Shown here: positions 5,683-24,266 of the stretch, piece by piece
How the letters are laid out: every line of letters begins with the position of its first letter
How positions within the stretch are numbered: position 1 is the stretch's first letter
Notes under the pieces: generated by a model
Told to the model about the DNA's origin: nothing
Database searches by the model: none
Seen by the model: only the letters and a program-made list of their open reading frames with translations
Program-made: the position numbers and the translations under genes
Assembly: GCA_976226885.1 (NCBI GenBank)
Contig: OZ320313.1
Span: 124,062,001 to 124,126,000, forward strand
Reading direction: 5' to 3'
DNA: 64,000 bases
DNA from: Iphione sp. A-MEVVRFRX5
Lineage: Eukaryota

Positions 5683-8600
5683 ATGGATTCGGATGTCGGA
5701 ACACCCCCAAGACGGAGAAAAATGCCTGTACTTGGAGAAGTGGAGCCTGAGAAGAACACGTCAAAATCAAGCGTACTGGATAGTTCAGGTAGGTACCATT
5801 CAATGATGGTATTGAATGCTTCCTTACTTCAGACATGTGTATCGGAAAGACCTACACATCTGCAAGTAGAGCGCCTACAATAGGGATTATCTAAACTCTT
5901 ACACAACAGATAAATGCTACCCAAGTGCCGACAAGACTGCAAACTGAGTAAGAGCGTTTCAAGGTTATATTATACGTAAAGATGGCCCCATATAATGGCA
6001 GTGAATTCATTTAGAGAACTGAAAATTTAATCAGAATGTTTGAACTTTGCCTTCTTTTCTCAAAGTCCTCATATACTGAAAACATAAACAATTTGCGGGC
6101 TTCTTGCACATAGCTCAGTTGTACCTATTACAGTAAGCCCTTGCCACTGCAACACTTCCAGGCAAAATGAGCCGGTACCAAGGGGTGTTCGAGGTTTAAC
6201 TGTAGTGCACTGCATCCTCTCTGAACTGGTACATCGGGCGATGTTACGATCCGTGTATCCAAAAACGCACAACTTTTCAACTTTTGATCTATCACGGGGG
6301 GGGGGGGCCTTGGGCGTGCTCTATCCTCACTTGTCTTTGACTGCTGGAGCTACCATATCCTTGTATATTTCCTAGAGATCTAGACACCCCGACTCATTGG
6401 TCAGCAAGGATCTGTACCAAAGAAAACTTTTAGCCGTAAAAAGAACAAGCAAATTTGGACAGTGTTGAGGCGGCAATAAACCTTGCATGTGGTTGAGATA
6501 CGCGTCACACGAGAATACATGTAATTTACATAAGTCATCATTCTCACTATATATGTCCCCAAATGTCAAAAAATGCTGAAGACAACCTCGCAGAACGTCT
6601 ACTTTTTAGGTGACGAAAAGCCGAGACGCCCAGAATCGAGCGCCAGTCGTTCTTTCCGTCGAACTGCAGGGCTAGTATCCAAAGCGAGACTGGCAACCAA
6701 GACCAGCAAGGCATTCGCTAGCGAAGAGTACAAAGCGATTAATAAGAGTTTGATATACCAGCTAATCCGTCCTCTCTTCATTATCATGTCCATAAACGGA
6801 ATCTTCTTTTATAAGGTGTGTCAACTCGTTAGGCCAAAAAATAGGCGTGTTTCTGGTTACCTAAAAAGCTTTTTGCCTCAAACAGTTCCCAAGGCTGAAT
6901 CTCCTTAGATGTGTGTTCTCGCAGCACATGTTTTTGTTAAATTCGGTAGAAAAACAAAGAAATCCATGGAAATTCAACAAAAAATGTAAAAATCATGTAA
7001 ATTGGCCAAAATTCTTCGTTTCCAGCAATATATGATTATCGAAATATGATGGTGCCAGGGCCTCCATCTTGGGCTTTGTCTACATGGAATAGCCTTAAAA
7101 TACAGATGCCATATCGCTAATCGAAAACCTGTGATTTTGATATTTGATCTTTAATTTATAACCTACATACTCTCTTAATAATATATAAGTATCCTGAATA
7201 ATAGAGAAATACAAAAAATATTGTCAGTATTGTTGAGAACCAGAGGCAGAAACTAAAAAATATTCTTTAAACGATTCCCCCCTCGCTATCTAGGTTTTCG
7301 GCTGGTCATAGCCAGAAACACACGTATTTTTTAGGGGCCTTATGTATAACCAAAAAAACTTCAGTATTCTTCAAGCGTGGAGTCTGGATTTCCTTAAAAG
7401 TGAGATTGGATCTCTTGAATGCGAAAAATACAATTATGTGGTGTTAATTTAATACGGCCTAGAGGAAATCTGTGTCTCCCGTAATGTGCTGAAAGGGGTA
7501 GGTAAGAAGGAAGGTGGTTTTTAAAAATAATCTTTCTTTATTTCCAGCGTTAATGGAACCTAAAAACAGCAAATATGTGTTTCCCAGCCTGAAACTACCA
7601 CTTCCAATGCTTGACCTCCCCCAGAAGAAACCTCTAGTATCTGAAGTAATTTGAGTTACAAATAGTGTTTTCTAGTTTAATTTCCTTCAAAATATTCATT
7701 AGCCGACACAAATCTATTGTGACAGAGGAAGATAATCGAAATACATGTAAGGCTTATAAAATGTATTAGACTGGATGGATGAGACTTATATGTACATAGA
7801 TATGTATGTTATCAGATTTTATTTTGCCAAACCGAAAGCACGTACAGCGCATGTGTAGTCGAAATGTAATTCGTTTTCCTGTCGTTCATCTGGTGCCTTA
7901 CAGGATAAGGAAATTTATACCACCGGCTTGCTGACGCGTCTGTTCGGTCCGAAGCGCTGGGGACCGGTGCAGATATACTGTGTGGTCGTGTCCGGTATAT
8001 TCATGCTGAACTGGCTAAGGTGGGTAGAAATGCTTCTTTAAACGACTACCGTAGTATCGGCGTAATCAGGGACGGATTTCTTCTTTAGCGATGAGGTTAT
8101 TGCTCTATAGGCATGTACGTGCGAAAGGTGTGAGATAGCACGGTATGGCATGCATGGCATAAGTTATCTTCGCAGAATCGATTTAGAGCATGAACATCGT
8201 TTATGAAGGGAAGGTAAACGATGCGAAGGGAAAGACAGACTTTCATTAAAACTAACATTCGCTCCCATTCCGCGCAGATCGTTTCTTTCCTTTGAGGCCA
8301 CCGACGGTTTTACCCATGTGCTCTTCTTCAAGACACTCTGGGTTCTGAAATGGTACCACGCCGCAAGCACGGCCATGCTCTTCTCCAATATCTGTTGGCC
8401 ACGGAAGAAGGGAAGCATCACCGATTTCTTTTTTAAGGTATGTTGCCATGCAATGCAAATGAAGTCGATTCCATAGACAACCCTATGTTGTACAAATCAA
8501 CCAGGAACATTTAAGGCTAAGTGACAGCGCACAATTATTTAATGATAAAGTGAAAAGGCGACATCCTATGTGAGACGATGTTAAAAGGCAGCATGCTATA

Positions 8601-13257: not shown

Positions 13258-13957
13258 GCAAATTCTTGAAGCACCTTGGCTTTTCTGCCTTCCCCATAAC
13301 CAATGGCTCCTCAAAGGCACCTGTCATAGAGACACATAGACAGAGGGTCAGCTCATCTTAAGATTTCTTGCCCCCAGCCATATTTGACTTCTTGACTGCT
13401 AATGTCCTGTCAGGCATCGATGTGTAGAAGATGCTGGTTTCATCTACACTGTAGTGGTCTTCCTCCTTGTAATCTTGGATGAGTGCTAGAAGTCTTTGGT
13501 GCCAATTATCAACCACTGTGGTATTAACAATGTAGGTACTGCTTCTCTCTCCTGATACCTTCTGCCCAGAAATTCAATGTTTTGACTTGAAATCTGTCAG
13601 CCAACTACCAGATGCCCTGAAGTTCTGGATGCCTATGTCAGTGGTCATGGTCAAGGTCCTGGCATGTATCCTAGGCCCTGGCACAGGGATCCCATGAGTC
13701 CTGATCTTGGTGAACCAGGAGAACATGGCATTGTCCAGTCTCTCAAACCCAAGAGTAATGCACTTCCCTTTCACCTGGAAGTTGTAGGACTTCTCATAAT
13801 CATCAAGAATGCTGGCATTTCTCTTCAAAATGGAGTAAACTAGTGATTTTGCTATTCCAAAGTCAGTGGCTAACTACCTCCGTGATTTCCCACAGGCTGA
13901 CTTGATGAACTTGACTTTTCCCTCCAAACTCAATTCCTTCCCCTGGGGAGATGCCAT
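13258..13957 (-). mobile_element. Tigger/pogo (CENP-B-type HTH + DDE_1 N-terminus) transposase pseudogene
   Basis: From ATG at 13957: MASPQGKELSLEGKVKFIK...LATDFGIAKSLVYSILKRNASIL...LDNAMFSWFTKIRTHGIPVPGP...NFRASGSWLTDFKSKH*ISGQKVSGE...YSVDETSIFYTSMPDRTL...GGKKS*DELTLCLCVSMTG...PLVMGKAEKPRCFKN. These are the HTH_psq, CENP-B HTH and DETG...KPRCFK motifs of TIGD4/6-like transposases, with three in-frame stops. Confidence 0.9.
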
Positions 13958-16900
13958 GCTGTATACACTGGCTCAGGCATGTACATATTGGCTCAGGGGT
14001 TTGTGAAGTGGAGAGTAGAGGGTGAATATAGTGATTCTGTAGAGATTGTTGGAATCTGAAATTGTTGTTGTTTGTGCGGGCTTGAGCTCCTTTGAAGGGG
14101 GAGCCAATTGCTTCACCAGTGCAACAGCACAATGCTGGATTTTGGGGGCTTCAGGCCTAGTTGTGTTTCTATTGTTTTGTTTCTGTGTGTAGGTGTTTTT
14201 TGAGCACTCGTGCACTCACCAATAACTGGCTCTTGTTGGGAGTTTTTTTTGTTGAGGGTGTGGATGTTGGTGTGAGTCTGTCATCCGTTGCTTCATTCTT
14301 GCTGTTGTTGTTTGCCCATTACAGGAAGAGAGGGAGAGCCAGATGCAGAAGTTAGAAGAACTAAGACCATGCAAGGTAGGGGCTGTACATCCCACTTTTG
14401 CATGCCATTGCTGTTTCTGGTGCCCTGCCTTCAGGGGGCTCTTGTGAGGTAGCTTGGACACCCCATAGGGTTGTGCAATGAGTTTCTTCTAGGTATGGGG
14501 TGTTGAGTATGCAAGGCTTATGCAATGGTGGAGCAGACACTTATGCATGCCACAGCTGGGGTTTTCTCCTGCCTCCATATAGATCCATGCATCTGGGATG
14601 GGCTATACACCTGGGTGCCTGGGGCAGCCTTGAGGAACATGAAACCAACTGCCCAATTTATATACTCATGGGCCTGGGGAGGTCAAAGAAATGCCTAAGC
14701 AGAGATTCTCTCAAGTCAAAATGCCTAAGGAGGTGTGACATGCATCACAAAGAGTATGATCAAGGTGCGACCAAGATGCGCCTGAGATGAAAGAGAGGGT
14801 GAATTGTTAAGTATACCCACAGTTCCCAACTTCAGAGGTGTGATATACATCAGAGGGAGTACTGTAATCTAATGTGTGTTGTCGCTCTACTTGGAAATAA
14901 TCCAACTATTTTACTACTAATCCTGGCTTAGTATTCCTTCAGTTAATCCAATTGGTTATCCCTTATGTTCCCCTAATGGTAGCTCCAAGTAGTTAATGGT
15001 TCCTTAGCAGAGAGACAAGTTCCACAAGGCAGTTCCAAGTGCAGACTGGTTTATTGGCCACACAGGACCCATATTTATAGCAGACATACATGTCATGTGA
15101 CCAACTCAATGTATCCAAAAATTAAATAAAGTTGATACATTACTCTTGTCTGTCTCTTCTGTCAATCAAACCTGGGGGCACTGAATGCAACAGTTGGGCC
15201 CCTTTAGTCAAGTTCCCCGTCAGGTAGGTTCCTACTCTACAAAATTCCCAAGTGTATACATATAGGCAATGTACTAAAAACAATTTGGTCCGATGGTACA
15301 ATGGTCTCTCACCCAATCTGGTCTCTCCCGCGATCTGGTCTCTATGCGGGTCCAGTGTATTGGCCTGAGATTAAGAATTTTGCATAGCAAGCCTGTGTGG
15401 TCTCATTGATTCTCCTATGTATTATTCCGCAACCATCAATTAGTGATGTTACTTTCCATATTATTTTTAGAGATTTTATCATTTATGAAATGCTTTTGAA
15501 AATAACCCGGCCTTGCAGTTCTTATGAATGAATGAAATACTAAGCACAGCTACCCGTGTTTTTCTGTGATCTGTCAAATATGCTATACATAACCTTTCAG
15601 AAAATGCCAATCAGTTTCCGGACAATAATCTATCAATGGCAATATTACCTTGTGTTGTAAAGTGGAAAGGATCGTTTAACTGTCTACCCATATTGTTTAT
15701 TAAATTTCCTCATGTGTGCCATTGGCATCAGCGTCCAGGAAAAAGCAAAATGTGTACCATAGACTATGTTGCACATATTATGGACATATCTGTTGTTAAA
15801 CACCAAACAGGTTCCGTATACCTGGCAAAGTAATCGCTACCTGTTCTTTCAGGCGCACCTGTAATTGAACTGTGTACATATGTGAGAATTCAACCAGATG
15901 GCTTGGAGGGATCACGAAAGCATGGTATATACGTGCGAATTTGAACAGATGTCTGCATAAATCATGCAATACGATGCTGTTGGTTGGACTGTACTGCTGT
16001 ATGGGTATCCTTTCTTACCTGGCGTTCTGCACGGAGATTTACATGGCCGTCCTCACCAGCCGTAGGTGATCGTTTTGAAGACAGTTGTTAATTCCAAATT
16101 TACCTTAAATTTGTTGGAGAGAATAATACAGGTCGGAGCTACCTTACCGGGTTGACTTCTTTGAGGACCAAGATATCAGTAAGTAGATTTTTTTGCACCT
16201 TACCCTGCAACTAAAACGTGTGATATTTCATTGTACGTTGTTTATTTCTAGGGCAAATGTTCCTAATTTGTTGACAGTTTTGTTGAAATATTGAGGAGTG
16301 TTTCAGTCACATGTGAATGTCATGTAATATCTTGTACCAGCTTGATGCTGTAGTGGTTTCCTTCTGTATCAATTTCTCGTAATATCAGTACCTTTTTCCC
16401 AACTGCTTTAAGATGATCACAGTTTCAGCCCATTCACAAAACGGAGTGTACTCGATCTGGAAGAAAATGTAGGATGAATGGGAAATTAGTTCCCACTGGA
16501 CTGTAGATATTGAAATATTGTGTAAAAAGGGTTCGTCTAAGGGAGAGCAATATTATGTGAAGGGTGAATCCAATCGTAGTGATAAGCTAACCTATAAAAT
16601 ACCTGTAATGTTTTAGCTACAGCAAAATATTTCAGAATGGACAGTCCGTTATTGTGCATCAAGCTGTCATGATTTCTTATCTGTTCTCCTCACAGTAGAG
16701 GTTTTTAAAGATATGTCCTAATGTTTAGTCTGTCCTCATTTTTAGTCTGTCTTTCCTGTCTGAAAGTGAAATTTGCTCCATTCAAGAATAATCGCATAAC
16801 TCCAGCGTTCCCTCACCCTGTAGACACTGAATTATTGCGATCACTTCCCAAATAAGATCAATGATGCAAGGAACACAATTTATATCCATGTAAGAATGTA

Positions 16901-18699
16901 TAAATTTTAAATACACCTTAAACATACAAAGCCTGGAATCGGGATAGTGTAGAGTATACTACACTGATAGTGAGTAACACTGGATACTAGTGGGTGGGGA
17001 GGTGTGTATCAGTTATCAGTGGGATACATTACAATGCTTATTGAACAAATTTTGTCATTACAACATATTTATATTATAAAGGCATAAGCTGGTGAAGATA
17101 TCAAATAAAGAGGTTGGGTACATCCTTTTGGCACCCCTTAAATAGTGGATACGAAGGTAAGACTGCCACCCATGGTTGTAATCTCGGCTAGATGCACGTC
17201 GAGCAAAATGCCACTGTATGTGCAGTCTAAATTTTTTAATCAATTACTTTGTTCAGAAAATGTATAAAATGTGTATATATAAAAACAAACATCAATTCTA
17301 AAATCAAATCGTGATCTTTGTTATATAAAGAAAATGACGAGATTTGTAAAAAAGTGGTTGGAAATGTCTTCATTCTATAGAACAAATATTAGTGCCATTT
17401 ATATCAGAAAAGGTGGATTAGGAAGCAATAGCAAATAACTGCTTGGCAGAACAACAGCTAATACGCTTTATCTTTACATGAGTTTTAAAATGGTATAAAG
17501 GTTTAGATCTATGGCACACATAATTGTCTACCCCTCTCAGCAGGCCATATATAGGAAATATCATTAACCGTGACTTTCCCAGTTATTCATGGGAAACTGG
17601 ATTGACCAAGTAGAATAAAACTGCATTAATGTTTTACAATTTCTCAAAGAAATAGATAATGTTTGAAGGAATGAAGATTCTTACACACCGGCACAAAACT
17701 TTTTCATCGGCCGAAAAATTTGCGTCGCTTCTACCGACACATTTTCTTGCCATGCATTTATCAATGAAGTGGGTGTTTACATCTTAAGTCCACTGGTTCT
17801 GATCCTTTCATCTGACAGCAATGATCGGAGGGGCCAATTTACCTGTCTTCTAATGCTTTGTGCAGGTGTCCAACAGTACATCCCCATATTTCACCTGTTA
17901 CTATCTCTTCCGTGCTACTATTGGCTCCCCACCTTTCCAAATATTGCTTATATTACTGGTTAATCGTCCATTTTACATAATTCAAAAACAGGGTCATCAT
18001 GATGACGGACTATGGGTATTGGATAAACCTCAATGAAAAGCATTTTTTGCAAATTCCGAAACCTGTAGTATTAAACTGTACTGCTTAGATATGCTGTACC
18101 TTATTACATATATGTAGATATAGTTGTGCATTTGTTTAAGATGTTACTGCCATAAAATCTCTACTAACGCCTAATAAGCGGTTTATACACGTACACTGTA
18201 CATGAACATAAGTGTATGATCAAAAGCTGGTTGTCTCTCCGTCTCCCTGTTTCTCGATCACTATTTAGAATAGAGTAAGAGATGCCTTATGATGAGTGAC
18301 TATAGTATTTAAACCTGCACTTAAGCTGTCCTATTATAAGTATAATCTATCCTATTAAATCAGCCCTCTGCCCATACATATTTGAAGCTTTCACGGCGAT
18401 TCTTCTTTGATCTTTTCCTATATTCTGTGTTCTGATTCCTCATGCACTATAATACCTCTAGTAAGATTTATTCGCCTGTCCCTTATTCCGCCAGGATTCA
18501 CAGTTATCCCTAACTTGATCCTCCAACTCATAACCTCATGTAATATTTTTCAAGACTGGAGACTATTTTCTTTCAGATGTGTCGTGTGCAGGTATTAAAC
18601 AAGGATCGGAAGTTGTAGACGACATGTGTAGAGGAATCGCCAGCGTCCGAGTTCGCGTCTCTTGGTGAACGAGTTTGAGCCGCACAAAGGAGACGAACA

Positions 18700-21600
18700 A
18701 TGGGGGATATTAGTAACAATCCAGACAAACCAGATGACCATCCAAAGCTGAACGGGACAGTAGAAACTGTCAACAAGCCTGCTGAGGAGTCCAAAGAAAG
18801 TGTTAGTTCACAAAAAGAATCGTCATGCTGGGTAGAGAAGTTAGATAGCAAATCCACTGATCTGCCAGCAAAGAAGACTGCAGTTGTAGTCCCAACGGTG
18901 CCGGCAATGAGTCAATCCAACAGAGATATCGAGAAGGGCATGGAGAACGATTCCATGCGCCCGGAGCCTACGTTACCTGCGGGGAAAAGGCTAATGAAAC
19001 ACAATTCGGTGTCATCCGTGGTTTCCGTAGCGAGTCTTGCGTCCAAGAAAGGCTGGGTCGACAACGCCAGCAACGCCAGCGAGGGCCCGGCCCCACCCGG
19101 CAGGCGTAACACGCAAAGAAAGTTTCAAAATATCAAATCCAAACATGCATTCGGCGCAGTGGAAGAGGAGAAGATGATCACAGAGTCCTTGCTCCACGGG
19201 GCTCTTAGACCTCTTTTATTTTGTATGAAAGTGACGGGCATTTTTTTCATACGAAAAAGGGGTCAGTTCGGCAAGTCGCTTAGAGAACTGATCAGAAGTT
19301 CCACACCGCTGCAAATCTATTGCATATTTATGAGCGTTGTACTTTTCCTCAATTTCTTGAGATCGATGTTTGCTTTCGACGAAAACGATGGTTTCAGCAA
19401 CACGATGTTCCTCAAGTTCCTAACAGCTATCTTCATGTACGAATCAGTGAGTGGGCATTCCTTCTCAATGCACCTTTTTTTCTACGACGATTTCCACAGT
19501 CTGTAGATAATTGGTTATACAGTAATGGAAATTTGGTTATGTCATGGGCAAAAGTAGAATTCGTTCAATTCCTAAATAGCTCTGCTAACGGTTTGCTGCA
19601 TTTCTCGCCCTTTTATGGAACGCGCACATAGTAAAGAGAGCAAGACCGCTCTTAAATTGCACGAATTCCATTTTTTGCGTATATCAGACACACTGATCTC
19701 TAATACGGTCAGTTCTTTCTTTACACATATTTTCAGTCGAGTCGAGCTGCATTGGCATATTGGCACGCTTATAGGAAATCCCATGGAATAGAGGAATTTT
19801 TTGTAACCTTCGAGAAGATATGTTATTCAGACGCCATCATACCTTACGAAACACCTCTGAAGTCAGTAATGCATGGATCTATAGTCTTCAGTATCTTGGT
19901 GAGTATCCTCTGCTTCTGTGATGAATTTCTTATTGGTACCAGGTAACAAGCCACCTGCTAATTTCGAGACTAATATTTAAACCCGTGGCTGCCTTGGGGG
20001 TTGGGTTTGAGGGGGTTAAATGTTAGTAAAATCCTTTGACAGTATTTATTACAACATAACATGATCAACATTATCTAGGGATAAAAATGAAGATACTGTG
20101 CAAAGGATGCATACAAATCCTACGGGCACCCTCTTCTAATCCCCCTCCTAGCCTTTGGTCTGTGATCACAATGAATAAAAGCCATTTCCTCAATTCATTA
20201 AATAGTACCCTAATTTCCAAAGGGCAAACAATCAAATGTAACCATCTATCTGGAGGAATGGGATAAACAAAGCTGACGCCTGTATCGTATACATTGTCGT
20301 GTGCTGAGTACATGTATAATGGAATATGGAACATCAGTAAGCAATAATCGACAAGCTAGCCTCACTAAAAATGCTGTACCAACACTAAAGACACGTTGGA
20401 ACCATTCTGCTGCATGCGCATATTCTTCATTCTGGTGGCTCCTTTCAATAACTGTGAATTGTTTTCTTTTCTTCTGAACTGTGCTTAGATTAGTCTCTTG
20501 AATATGGGATTCACTGCCTATGGAGTGTTTGGAACTGCATCCGACCAATTTGATTCTTACATTCTACCTGTACCGCCGGATGCTCCAGGTATGTTCCAAC
20601 AGATGACCCACTAAAGATTTGCGAAGTCATAGGCCCTTAGAACTGATATGTCTGGATAGAGATAGACGTTGAATTGAACAACATAGAAAACTTTACTTCT
20701 TCACCAGAAATCCAGACTGTATGGCTATGTTTTTCTAAATCAAACTACAAAAATACCAAAACTACTATCTAATTAATGCATAAACAGTCGAATCATTTCA
20801 GCACTAGCTCACTATAGCAACTCGTAGCTAAGTGCCCTCTCTTGGAATATATGAAGTGCAGTGCTTACAAGGCATATCTCACTTAAAGCATGGTTCTTAA
20901 ACCTCAATGCACTCTCATTTCCTGAATGGGGAATTTGACTATAAATGTAAAAACAACCCATGGTGCAGTTTTTGTGTGCACTTGGTTACAGTATGTACTC
21001 TGGCCATCCGAATCCCCTAAGGTGTGTCATACATTATGATAATCCACTGGATATTCGCTATTTTGTCGGTTGTTAGAAATCTCTAGGCTCCAAGGCTGAC
21101 ATAAAATGTCAAAGAGCTGTACATGATTCATAATGCGCAGATAATGAAAGATAGTTTACATACAGATAAACAAATCTGAATGAAACAGGACCAAAATTCC
21201 TTTGTAAAATGCTTTTGGCTTTTTAATGACAAAGTACCCCTGCTCCTCTTCTTTATACGTTAAAATCTCCCTCTAATGGAACTGCCCATGGCCATTCTCA
21301 AAGGTTGGTCCTGTCTGATATATCTTATTTGCTGTTAGCTATGGAGAGGACTCCAAGTATACAGCATTATTTCAATTCCACTGTGTTATATTTATAAATG
21401 TTTAGATATATGAATGTCAAAAACTATTATAAGCAACTAGATGCAATAACATGAAAAGAAATAGGATGGGCGTTGTCTAATCAGTATAGGAAGTGGTCTG
21501 AGATGCAGAAATCTTAACTAATGAAATCCAAACCATAATAAAGATATTACTGAAAGGACGTTGCCGATGATAGCAATAATAGTATGAATGCTCAACTGCT

Positions 21601-24266
21601 TATATAGGGGAGGTATATATTCTTTGTAATGTTAGATGAATTTGCGTGACTGTAGCTTGCTTATCATTAGTAACATGTTGTTTAAGTTAATATTATAAAT
21701 GTATGTGAACGTTACTATCTGGCTGCAAATACAATATTGCTTGCTTTTGCCTGTATAAATAAAGATATTAATAATAATTATAATAATTTGAGGGAGTTGA
21801 GAATCTTATAGAGAATGCCATTTTGTTCTTTTCAAATATTGTCCATTGCAGGTCTAGTTTCAATCAAGAGCTGGTCTTTAAATTAGTCTCTTGTGTGTGT
21901 CGTTAAATCTGTTGAGAAAATTTCTAACAGCGAAGTGACACAGTGGCTCTATCCTTTTCAGCGGTTGAGGCTATGAAAGTGTTCATCCTCATCCTGGTGC
22001 TCATCAACGGCCTTGTTGCTATGTTAAGTTTAAGCTTCTTCACTGTTATTTGTTTTGTTCTGTACAAGGAGTTTGAGTACCTGTGTAGGACACTTGTCAT
22101 GAAGGTAAGGGATAAAAACAGCTATGATAATAACACTATGTTGATAAGTTTCAGCAAGTATGTTGAACCCTGAAAACACGAGATTTCTCTCTAATCAACC
22201 GACAGACATTTCCGGGTACAAGCTTCCAAAAACTCTGTATACAAGACAACGTTCTGTAACTTATGTTTTGTTGGTAATTGCATGCTTTTGTATTTACCGG
22301 TCATCTGTTAAGGCACATTTTCATACATCTTTCTATCATTACCACAGTAAAAATACCATGGCTTCTCGGTCAAGAAAAGTGGCTTCCATAAGTCCTCATT
22401 CTCCATTTATGGACTGCCAGTACATGTGCTCCATACCCCATAACTTTTGGACAATATGGAAGAATGAATAATCAGTCTTAGGCCCAGGACCTGTGTTTAC
22501 ATTGTGTATGTCCTTGTAGTGTTTACCATTATGACACATATCTGTCACGTATCAAAATCACATATACATGTATATGTGTGTGTGATGGATAGACGTCGGC
22601 CTGACAGCCACTAAAAGGACATGAACAATCTTGATTTCTTCCCCTAAAAGAATTCAAAGGGCACGTACTGGGTATGAACGATGCAGATATGGGTGCTCAG
22701 CGTCAACATTACATCCATGACTTCAAAGGCCGATGTTGCATTAAAATCATTGTACGGATTTTATCCTTCGTAGATCCGTGATGATGGCTCTTTTACGGAT
22801 GATCTGGAGAAATTTCGCATCACTCACCAGAAGCGATGTAAACTGGTGGAGGATGCCGACATGATGTTCAAATACTACATCGCCAACACATACATGACGA
22901 ACGTACCGTTGCTCTGTGTTTTGCTCTATGTGATTGTCTACGCAGAAGGTAGTGACATCAGCTATCGACTCATCAACGCTTTTCGCCTGGTATATGTGCT
23001 CGTTCAAATGGCCGTGGTCTCCATAGCAGCTACTATGATCAATAACCAGGTAGGTTGAATTCACCCTCAGCCCCTGTTATATGTGTTTGTGTGTTTTCAC
23101 GGCCAATGCTACATTTGACGTTATTTTCGGAGCAGTCTGTACGAGGCTCCTTTAATGACTTGAAGACACCCAAACTGAGTGAGATGTTATTATGTATGTT
23201 CACACATACGTTTATGTTACAACCCATCCTGGACTGATTGGTGCACTACATGTACTTATACATCCCTATGCTTGAACACTTTATACATTTAGACAGGTTA
23301 CTTGAAAACAATGCGCACACACATTCAGGCAGTTCCACTGATGAATCCGTTTGCGTGAACAAATATATACTTATGTAAAAGGGCACATTCGTGTCAGGAA
23401 AGGTTCTGTTTCAAAGGTGATGAAGGACGACAAGAGAGGATGTCACTGTAACTAGTGTCCTTTTCGGTTTTTATTCCTAGGCACATGCTCCTCTAGGAGA
23501 TATTTATAGTATCAAAGTACAGAACACATCCCTTGAAAGGCAATTAGAGGTAAGTCATTAATAATAGCATACACAGCTTTGTAGAATTAAGAACTCCATG
23601 TATAGCATATGCCCCCATCAGATACAAATCTCGGGACTGGGACATATATAGAGCGTCTTCCTCAGGTTAATGTCCTTAGGAGGTCGGGAATTTAATGTAA
23701 ATATACATATAAATGCACACATTAACCTCTTGAAGTTCTTGCTGTTTCCAAAGAGTTAGTCTGTAAGTGGGTTTCGATTGTGTCATGCACATGCATTTTC
23801 AGCTATTTGTTGATAGTAATATAAAATGGACTCATTCCAGGTGAATATGTTCTTGAACAAGCTGACAGGGACTTCGATTGGTTTGACAGCATGGGATATG
23901 TTCGTGATAAATAAACCAACTGTGCTTACCGTAAGTCTTTTGTTTTGAAACGTCTTGTAAGGTTGATATCATCATCATTGATTTACCTAGATAAACTAAG
24001 TTATGCTCTGCTCATTTCCTCTGATATAGAGGTACACTTGAGCAAATTACGTCACAGAGACGTCCGTACATTTAAGTTTAGCCTTTTTGAAATTTCAGGT
24101 CATTGGTATGGTGCTTACCTACTTCTTTCTACTTGTGCAATTCAAGAACCCACTTGGAGAACCAACTGAGTGCAGATGTATGGTGAACGTCTCTAGTCAA
24201 CATCTTGGGACACTGATATATAGTCTAACAACAACTGACTATACTAGTAATTTCACGACACCATAA
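18700..24266 (+). CDS. Gustatory-receptor-like protein B (GRL, 7TM chemoreceptor/7tm_7 superfamily), 8 exons, 584 aa
   Basis: Exons 18700-19446, 19737-19898, 20489-20588, 21962-22104, 22774-23049, 23481-23549, 23841-23930 and 24099-24266 total 1755 nt. All junctions are GT-AG and phase-consistent; an in-frame TGA at 18676 lies upstream of the ATG. It aligns to GRL-A throughout (DDLEKFRI.HQKRCKLVE.AD..FK; HAPL..I.SIK; TAWDMF.INKP..LT) and has the TM7 motif TYFFLLVQF. Confidence 0.92.

Follow-up and report, generated by a model that had tools for sequence, protein, structure and literature searches.

Two neighbouring genes in a 64,000-nucleotide stretch of Iphione sp. A-MEVVRFRX5 DNA (contig OZ320313.1, positions 124,062,001 to 124,126,000 of the forward strand; hereafter the window) are very probably both functional members of the gustatory-receptor-like (GRL) branch of the seven-transmembrane-helix (7TM) ion channel superfamily, old same-strand neighbour paralogs that belong to two conserved subgroups. 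Gene 1 occupies 5683-11420 on the + strand (11 exons, 1509 nt, 502 codons, a single terminal stop) and gene 2 occupies 18700-24266, also on the + strand (8 exons, 1755 nt, 584 codons), with 7,279 bp between the stop of gene 1 and the ATG of gene 2. Both spliced models were rebuilt from the window sequence using stop-free segments and their flanking splice signals, and all 17 introns, ten of them in gene 1, have GT...AG ends. The original prediction had claimed two complete spliced open reading frames (ORFs) of 502 and 584 residues in the same orientation, 7.3 kb apart, with several hydrophobic helices each. The rebuilt models reproduce this exactly, and hydropathy gives seven strong hydrophobic segments for each protein. 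The window has a GC content of ~40% and is eukaryotic DNA.

Hallmarks of the gustatory receptor (GR) and GRL family are a motif in the seventh transmembrane helix (TM7), (T/S)Yhhhhh(Q/K/E)(F/L/M), and a set of conserved 3' introns (PMC7746228). The motif is present as TYFFLMVQL in gene 1 and TYFFLLVQF in gene 2, in agreement with the TYFFL(M/L)VQ(L/F) of the prediction. In published GR and GRL genes, a long first exon is followed by exons of 69 bp and 90 bp and by a short final one, with a phase-0 intron before each of these three (PMC13388675, PMC9998090). The window genes end in exons of 69 bp, 90 bp and then 147 bp (gene 1) or 168 bp (gene 2), and the three terminal phase-0 introns that had been predicted for each gene are indeed all in phase 0 and lie at identical aligned positions in the two genes, so that the terminal structure of both is a precise positional match to the published one. 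The exons of the two models are as follows, with outside support for some of them noted at the end of the line.

5683-5788, + strand: gene 1 exon 1, with the ATG and a disordered N-terminus; donor in phase 1
6610-6815, + strand: gene 1 exon 2, N-terminal tail and first hydrophobic helix; tblastn of kin
7904-8019, + strand: gene 1 exon 3, second helix; donor in phase 2; paralog alignment
8278-8437, + strand: gene 1 exon 4; tblastn of kin
8885-9034, + strand: gene 1 exon 5; tblastn of kin
9300-9452, + strand: gene 1 exon 6, long hydrophobic helix; tblastn of kin
9824-9957, + strand: gene 1 exon 7, cytoplasmic DDLEKFRIMHQKRCKLVE segment; donor GTTAGT in phase 2; tblastn of kin
10268-10445, + strand: gene 1 exon 8, two helices equivalent to S5-S6; tblastn of kin
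10614-10682, + strand: gene 1 exon 9, the canonical 69-bp GR exon, phase-0 introns on both sides; paralog alignment
10928-11017, + strand: gene 1 exon 10, the canonical 90-bp GR exon, phase-0 introns on both sides; tblastn of kin
11274-11420, + strand: gene 1 last exon, TM7 with TYFFLMVQL at 11292-11318 and the stop at 11418-11420
18700-19446, + strand: gene 2 exon 1, a low-complexity N-terminus of ~160 residues, then the first helices
19737-19898, + strand: gene 2 exon 2; ortholog in contig L001
20489-20588, + strand: gene 2 exon 3; donor in phase 1; ortholog in L001
21962-22104, + strand: gene 2 exon 4, long hydrophobic helix; ortholog in L001
22774-23049, + strand: gene 2 exon 5, cytoplasmic DDLEKFRITHQKRCKLVE segment and two helices equivalent to S5-S6; 91% identity to the L001 ortholog
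23481-23549, + strand: gene 2 exon 6, the canonical 69-bp GR exon, phase-0 introns on both sides; ortholog in L001
23841-23930, + strand: gene 2 exon 7, the canonical 90-bp GR exon, phase-0 introns on both sides; tblastn of kin
24099-24266, + strand: gene 2 last exon, TM7 with TYFFLLVQF at 24117-24143 and the stop at 24264-24266; tblastn of kin

For gene 1 exon 7, an alternative donor and acceptor pair three bases off gives a product of equal length with one residue changed.

A chance chain of ORFs is ruled out as the source of these models, since homologs from other species are collinear with the exons across the junctions, and gap-free at nearly all of them. Gene 2 aligns with one relative, P0015, at 50.3% identity over 376 residues, every junction being free of gaps for 10 residues to either side, and with another, P0160, at 37.7% over 493 residues with the three terminal junctions gap-free; gene 1 aligns with P0160 at 32.8% over 411 residues. 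When relatives are searched by tblastn against the whole window, the matches are collinear with the modelled exons, the three terminal exons included, and fall only on the gene 1 and gene 2 loci, so the window holds no further GRL copies by this search. Contig L001, which belongs to another species and was reached through relative P0001, carries orthologs of gene 2 exons 1-6, the last two exons being outside the fetched flank. Exons 2-6 are matched there from first to last codon at 61-91% amino-acid identity, and in two introns the leading 200 nt align no better than ~52-57%. Exon 5 of gene 2 is 72-89% identical to its counterparts in species other than that of L001. Word searches with exon 1 and exon 5 turned up nothing but single-exon ORF calls without names, from metagenome or Logan contigs, and the clusters of these ORFs supplied no names either. 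L001 also contains two partial extra copies of exon 5, at 15701-15796 and 15999-16189, which lie upstream of the complete one (16347-16622); one of the two is 94% identical over 49 residues. They are local exon duplications or decayed copies, and nothing similar to them was found in the window.

With exon 5 of gene 2 alone, the sole match among PDB sequences is the Anopheles odorant receptor (OR) OR28, at E 0.18; it falls on the cytoplasmic start of S5, the correct position in the protein. A phmmer search with the last exon finds no match among PDB sequences. A profile (A1) made from gene 2 exon 5, seven orthologous ORFs and the two gene 1 exons of the same region improves the OR28 match to E 0.014, and the same profile finds 201 relatives at E <= 1e-3 among 1.84 billion representative proteins. 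The Pfam family 7tm_7 is matched by 16 of the 20 relatives scanned, eight of them above its gathering score of 26.6 bits (P0040 65.9, P0160 63.9, P0044 50.4, P0028 33.2, P0056 31.0, P0163 30.1, P0035 28.4 and P0021 27.1), and several also match Trehalose_recp and 7tm_6. The only named relatives are the annelid proteins P0160 (Owenia fusiformis CAH1786853.1) and P0019 (Capitella teleta ELU10767.1), which fits the earlier assignment of the DNA to a non-insect invertebrate and makes an annelid the probable source. The Capitella protein (1041 residues) is named a glycosyltransferase family 92 protein and is probably a merged gene model, because its GRL part takes up only about the first 460 residues. 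Most of the relatives of 340-400 residues (P0047-P0159) stop a few residues past the helix equivalent to S6; nearly all such entries lack the TM7 motif because gene callers evidently stop at the first terminal phase-0 intron.

Evidence on the fold comes by proxy, from an AlphaFold2 model of relative P0160 made with an alignment (A2) of 72 relatives. The model has a mean predicted local distance difference test score (pLDDT) of 81.7, with the membrane core above 90. Its Foldseek search of the PDB gives 24 matches at probability 1.00, all of them insect GR, OR or Orco entries (Gr64a, Gr43a, BmGr9, MhOR5, ApOR5-Orco, AaOR10, AgOR28 and Orco), with E from 1e-9 to 1.6e-3 (23 at or below 1e-3) and template modelling scores, normalized by target, of 0.62-0.78. 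The next matches are noise, with E above 0.06, and this direct fall from GR/OR entries to noise rules out a G protein-coupled receptor or another multipass family. By sequence, the profile of A2 matches Gr64a at 5e-9 and OR28 at 2.6e-7. The original prediction's assignment to the GR/GRL superfamily is thus borne out by the TM7 motif, the terminal exon structure, homology to proteins that pass 7tm_7 and the GR/OR fold of a relative.

Gene 1 and gene 2 are 44.6% identical over 408 paired positions. In a maximum-likelihood tree of 27 rows that includes both spliced window proteins, gene 1 groups with P0021 and P0026/P0164 (support 99/97), and gene 2 lies in a nine-row clade (100/99), which also contains the group of gene 1, beside Capitella P0019, P0015 and P0016/P0018. 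Because of this low identity, and because each of the two clades has members from other samples, the duplication must be old. P0015, on the gene 2 side, and P0164, on the gene 1 side, come from one assembly, so at least one other organism keeps both lineages. Between gene 2 and its L001 ortholog, the nonsynonymous distance (dN) is 0.18 over 353 codons and synonymous sites are saturated, for which reason the Nei-Gojobori (NG86) method yields no ratio of nonsynonymous to synonymous change (dN/dS); low dN beside saturated synonymous sites indicates strong purifying selection on gene 2. The proposal of an old duplication kept intact on both sides agrees with the paralog identity, the clade membership and this dN.

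The region of the canonical long first exon is split by seven extra introns in gene 1 and four in gene 2, none at a shared position. The extra introns of gene 2 are common to L001. In Owenia (contig L003), in contig L002 and in assembly GCA_013332715.1 (L004 and L007), unlike in the window genes, this region is uninterrupted, a single open frame. Since the extra introns lie at non-matching positions and the first exon of these relatives is unbroken, the most economical explanation would be a separate gain of introns in each paralog once the gene had been duplicated. The terminal exons were not detected in L002.

Paired GRL subgroups in annelids have been published, so the window pair is an ordinary, known kind of gene. 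The spionids Lindaspio polybranchiata and Streblospio benedicti have two GRLs each, which fall in two subgroups shared with Capitella teleta and carry a TYhhhhhQF motif (PMC11730519). The window genes resemble these annelid GRLs in their motif and in being two genes in two subgroups per genome, and the Capitella protein lies inside the same clade as the window genes; most likely the pair corresponds to the two published subgroups, the spionid sequences being compared by description only. With the Owenia fusiformis proteins (CAH1786852-54) they share 33-38% identity over more than 400 residues, and Owenia too has a same-strand tandem pair, ~7 kb apart; L002 has another, 1.5 kb apart (P0016/P0018). 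Unlike the window genes, the Owenia and L002 pairs are each monophyletic in the tree, that is, separate duplications or homogenised copies, and local duplication or homogenisation of neighbours is therefore recurrent in the GRL family. Owenia differs further in having no middle terminal intron: at 12959-13117 of L003 (CAIIXF020000006.1) the equivalents of the 69-bp and 90-bp exons are contiguous. As annotated, Owenia CAH1786852.1 (393 residues) and CAH1786854.1 (521 residues) have no TM7, and the former stops where the long first exon ends. Upstream of P0016/P0018 on the same strand, L002 has a 351-residue ORF (5833-6888, +) that gene 2 exon peptides do not match by tblastn at E <= 1.

Insect GRs (7tm_7, PF08395; Gr64a, Gr43a and BmGr9) are alike in the TM7 motif, the 69-bp, 90-bp and short last exons with their phase-0 introns and, through P0160, the fold. 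They are unlike in that structure-based alignments of P0160 with them reach only 11-17% identity, in that the window genes encode N-termini lengthened by a long disordered stretch and have a first exon broken by secondary introns, and in gene number, with two or three GRLs per genome and not dozens. Insect ORs and Orco (7tm_6) share the fold, and it is an OR to whose cytoplasmic S5 end exon 5 of gene 2 is drawn when searched alone; relatives of the window genes, P0056 excepted, score lower on 7tm_6 than on 7tm_7. The ORs are an insect-specific offshoot of the GRs (PMC7746228).

By homology with the solved insect relatives, each window protein would have its N-terminus inside the cell, cross the membrane with seven helices and assemble as a tetramer that forms a ligand-gated cation channel. 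The C-terminal half of TM7 (TM7b), which holds the TY.....Q(F/L) motif, would line the pore; of the residues of this motif, TY would lie where subunits meet and the last one at the gate, as described for the family (PMC7746228). That gate residue is F in gene 2 and L in gene 1. For both proteins, channel function, chemosensory role, stoichiometry and ligand are all matters that we only infer.

A role other than external chemoreception is the alternative that survives best, although we consider it unlikely. GRLs may serve internal, developmental or non-chemical sensory ends: a cnidarian GRL is reported to act in body patterning, and the nematode GR relatives LITE-1 and GUR-3 to sense light and peroxide. 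Both window genes might be GRLs of that kind, as their repertoire of two or three copies per genome is not expanded and as the very strong conservation of exon 5 is more like that of a housekeeping sensor than of a fast-evolving taste receptor. That functional data from outside the arthropods are very sparse counts in favour of such a role too (PMC7746228). Against such a role, the Lindaspio GRLs are expressed in the head region that bears the chemosensory antennae (PMC11730519).

It is improbable, to a greater degree, that the two proteins are obligate partners in one heteromeric channel, like insect OR-Orco or Gr21a-Gr63a, and that both genes were kept for this reason. Such a partnership would agree with the retention of both subgroups, with the other assembly that has one member per clade, with the shared strand and neighbourhood of the two genes and with the different residues at the gate position of the motif (QL and QF). 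Gr43a, Gr64a and BmGr9, however, were solved as homotetramers; Owenia and L002 carry recent lineage-specific pairs and not one gene per subgroup; and two ligand specificities would explain the retention of both paralogs equally well. The spionid GRLs, reported to number exactly two and to share their two subgroups with Capitella, also speak for such a partnership (PMC11730519). The broader proposition, that the annelid subgroups constitute an obligate pair of co-receptor and tuning receptor, OR-Orco-like and arisen independently outside the arthropods, is if anything slightly less likely still.

Several points weigh against our preferred reading of two functional GRL genes. A Pfam scan of ten single-exon ORFs gave no relevant match, no exon reaching threshold, because the exons are short (23-249 residues), and the Pfam and fold evidence is transitive, passing through relatives that are 33-50% identical. 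The low-complexity N-terminus of gene 2 is atypical for insect GRs, the junctions and the expression of both genes are predictions from sequence (a search for sequencing runs with gene 2 listed none, without showing that none are available), and we know of no non-insect GRL ligand that predicts function. Gene 1 has the longer branch (0.98, compared with 0.56) and a weak donor at exon 7, and the selection estimate covers gene 2 only, there being no close ortholog DNA for gene 1. These last points, with the seven secondary introns, are what could be said for a gene 1 that is decaying or unexpressed though its frame is open, with gene 2 alone functional, but we regard this as very improbable, since its 502 codons run over 11 exons without a stop or frameshift, its ten introns are all GT-AG, its TM7 motif and 69-bp and 90-bp exons are intact, members of its clade from other samples also have long open frames, and a copy as far diverged from gene 2 as this one would, if free of constraint, have been disrupted long ago.

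The window also holds features other than the GRL genes. Between the two genes, an ORF fragment at 13574-13828 (- strand) matches Pfam HTH_Tnp_Tc5 (34.6 bits, E 1.9e-8) and looks like the remnant of a pogo/Tigger-type transposase; the adjoining ORF at 13358-13516 (- strand) looks like part of the same element and has no Pfam match. A (TCA)n microsatellite with 13.7 repeat units (11896-11936) closely follows gene 1 on its downstream side and yields poly-Ser and poly-Asp/Glu ORFs on both strands.

The window pair leaves the view of the GRL family unchanged. Were the two proteins to form a heteromer, this would be an OR-Orco-like arrangement arising independently outside the arthropods. No branch of this very large ion channel family is less well understood than the GRLs from outside arthropods, almost none of which has a known ligand, and a complete pair of gene models from two conserved annelid subgroups is clean material for expression studies and electrophysiology. 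The pair is also a clear case in which the ancestral GR structure, with its 69-bp, 90-bp and short last exons, has been kept in different phyla while introns were added to the first exon.

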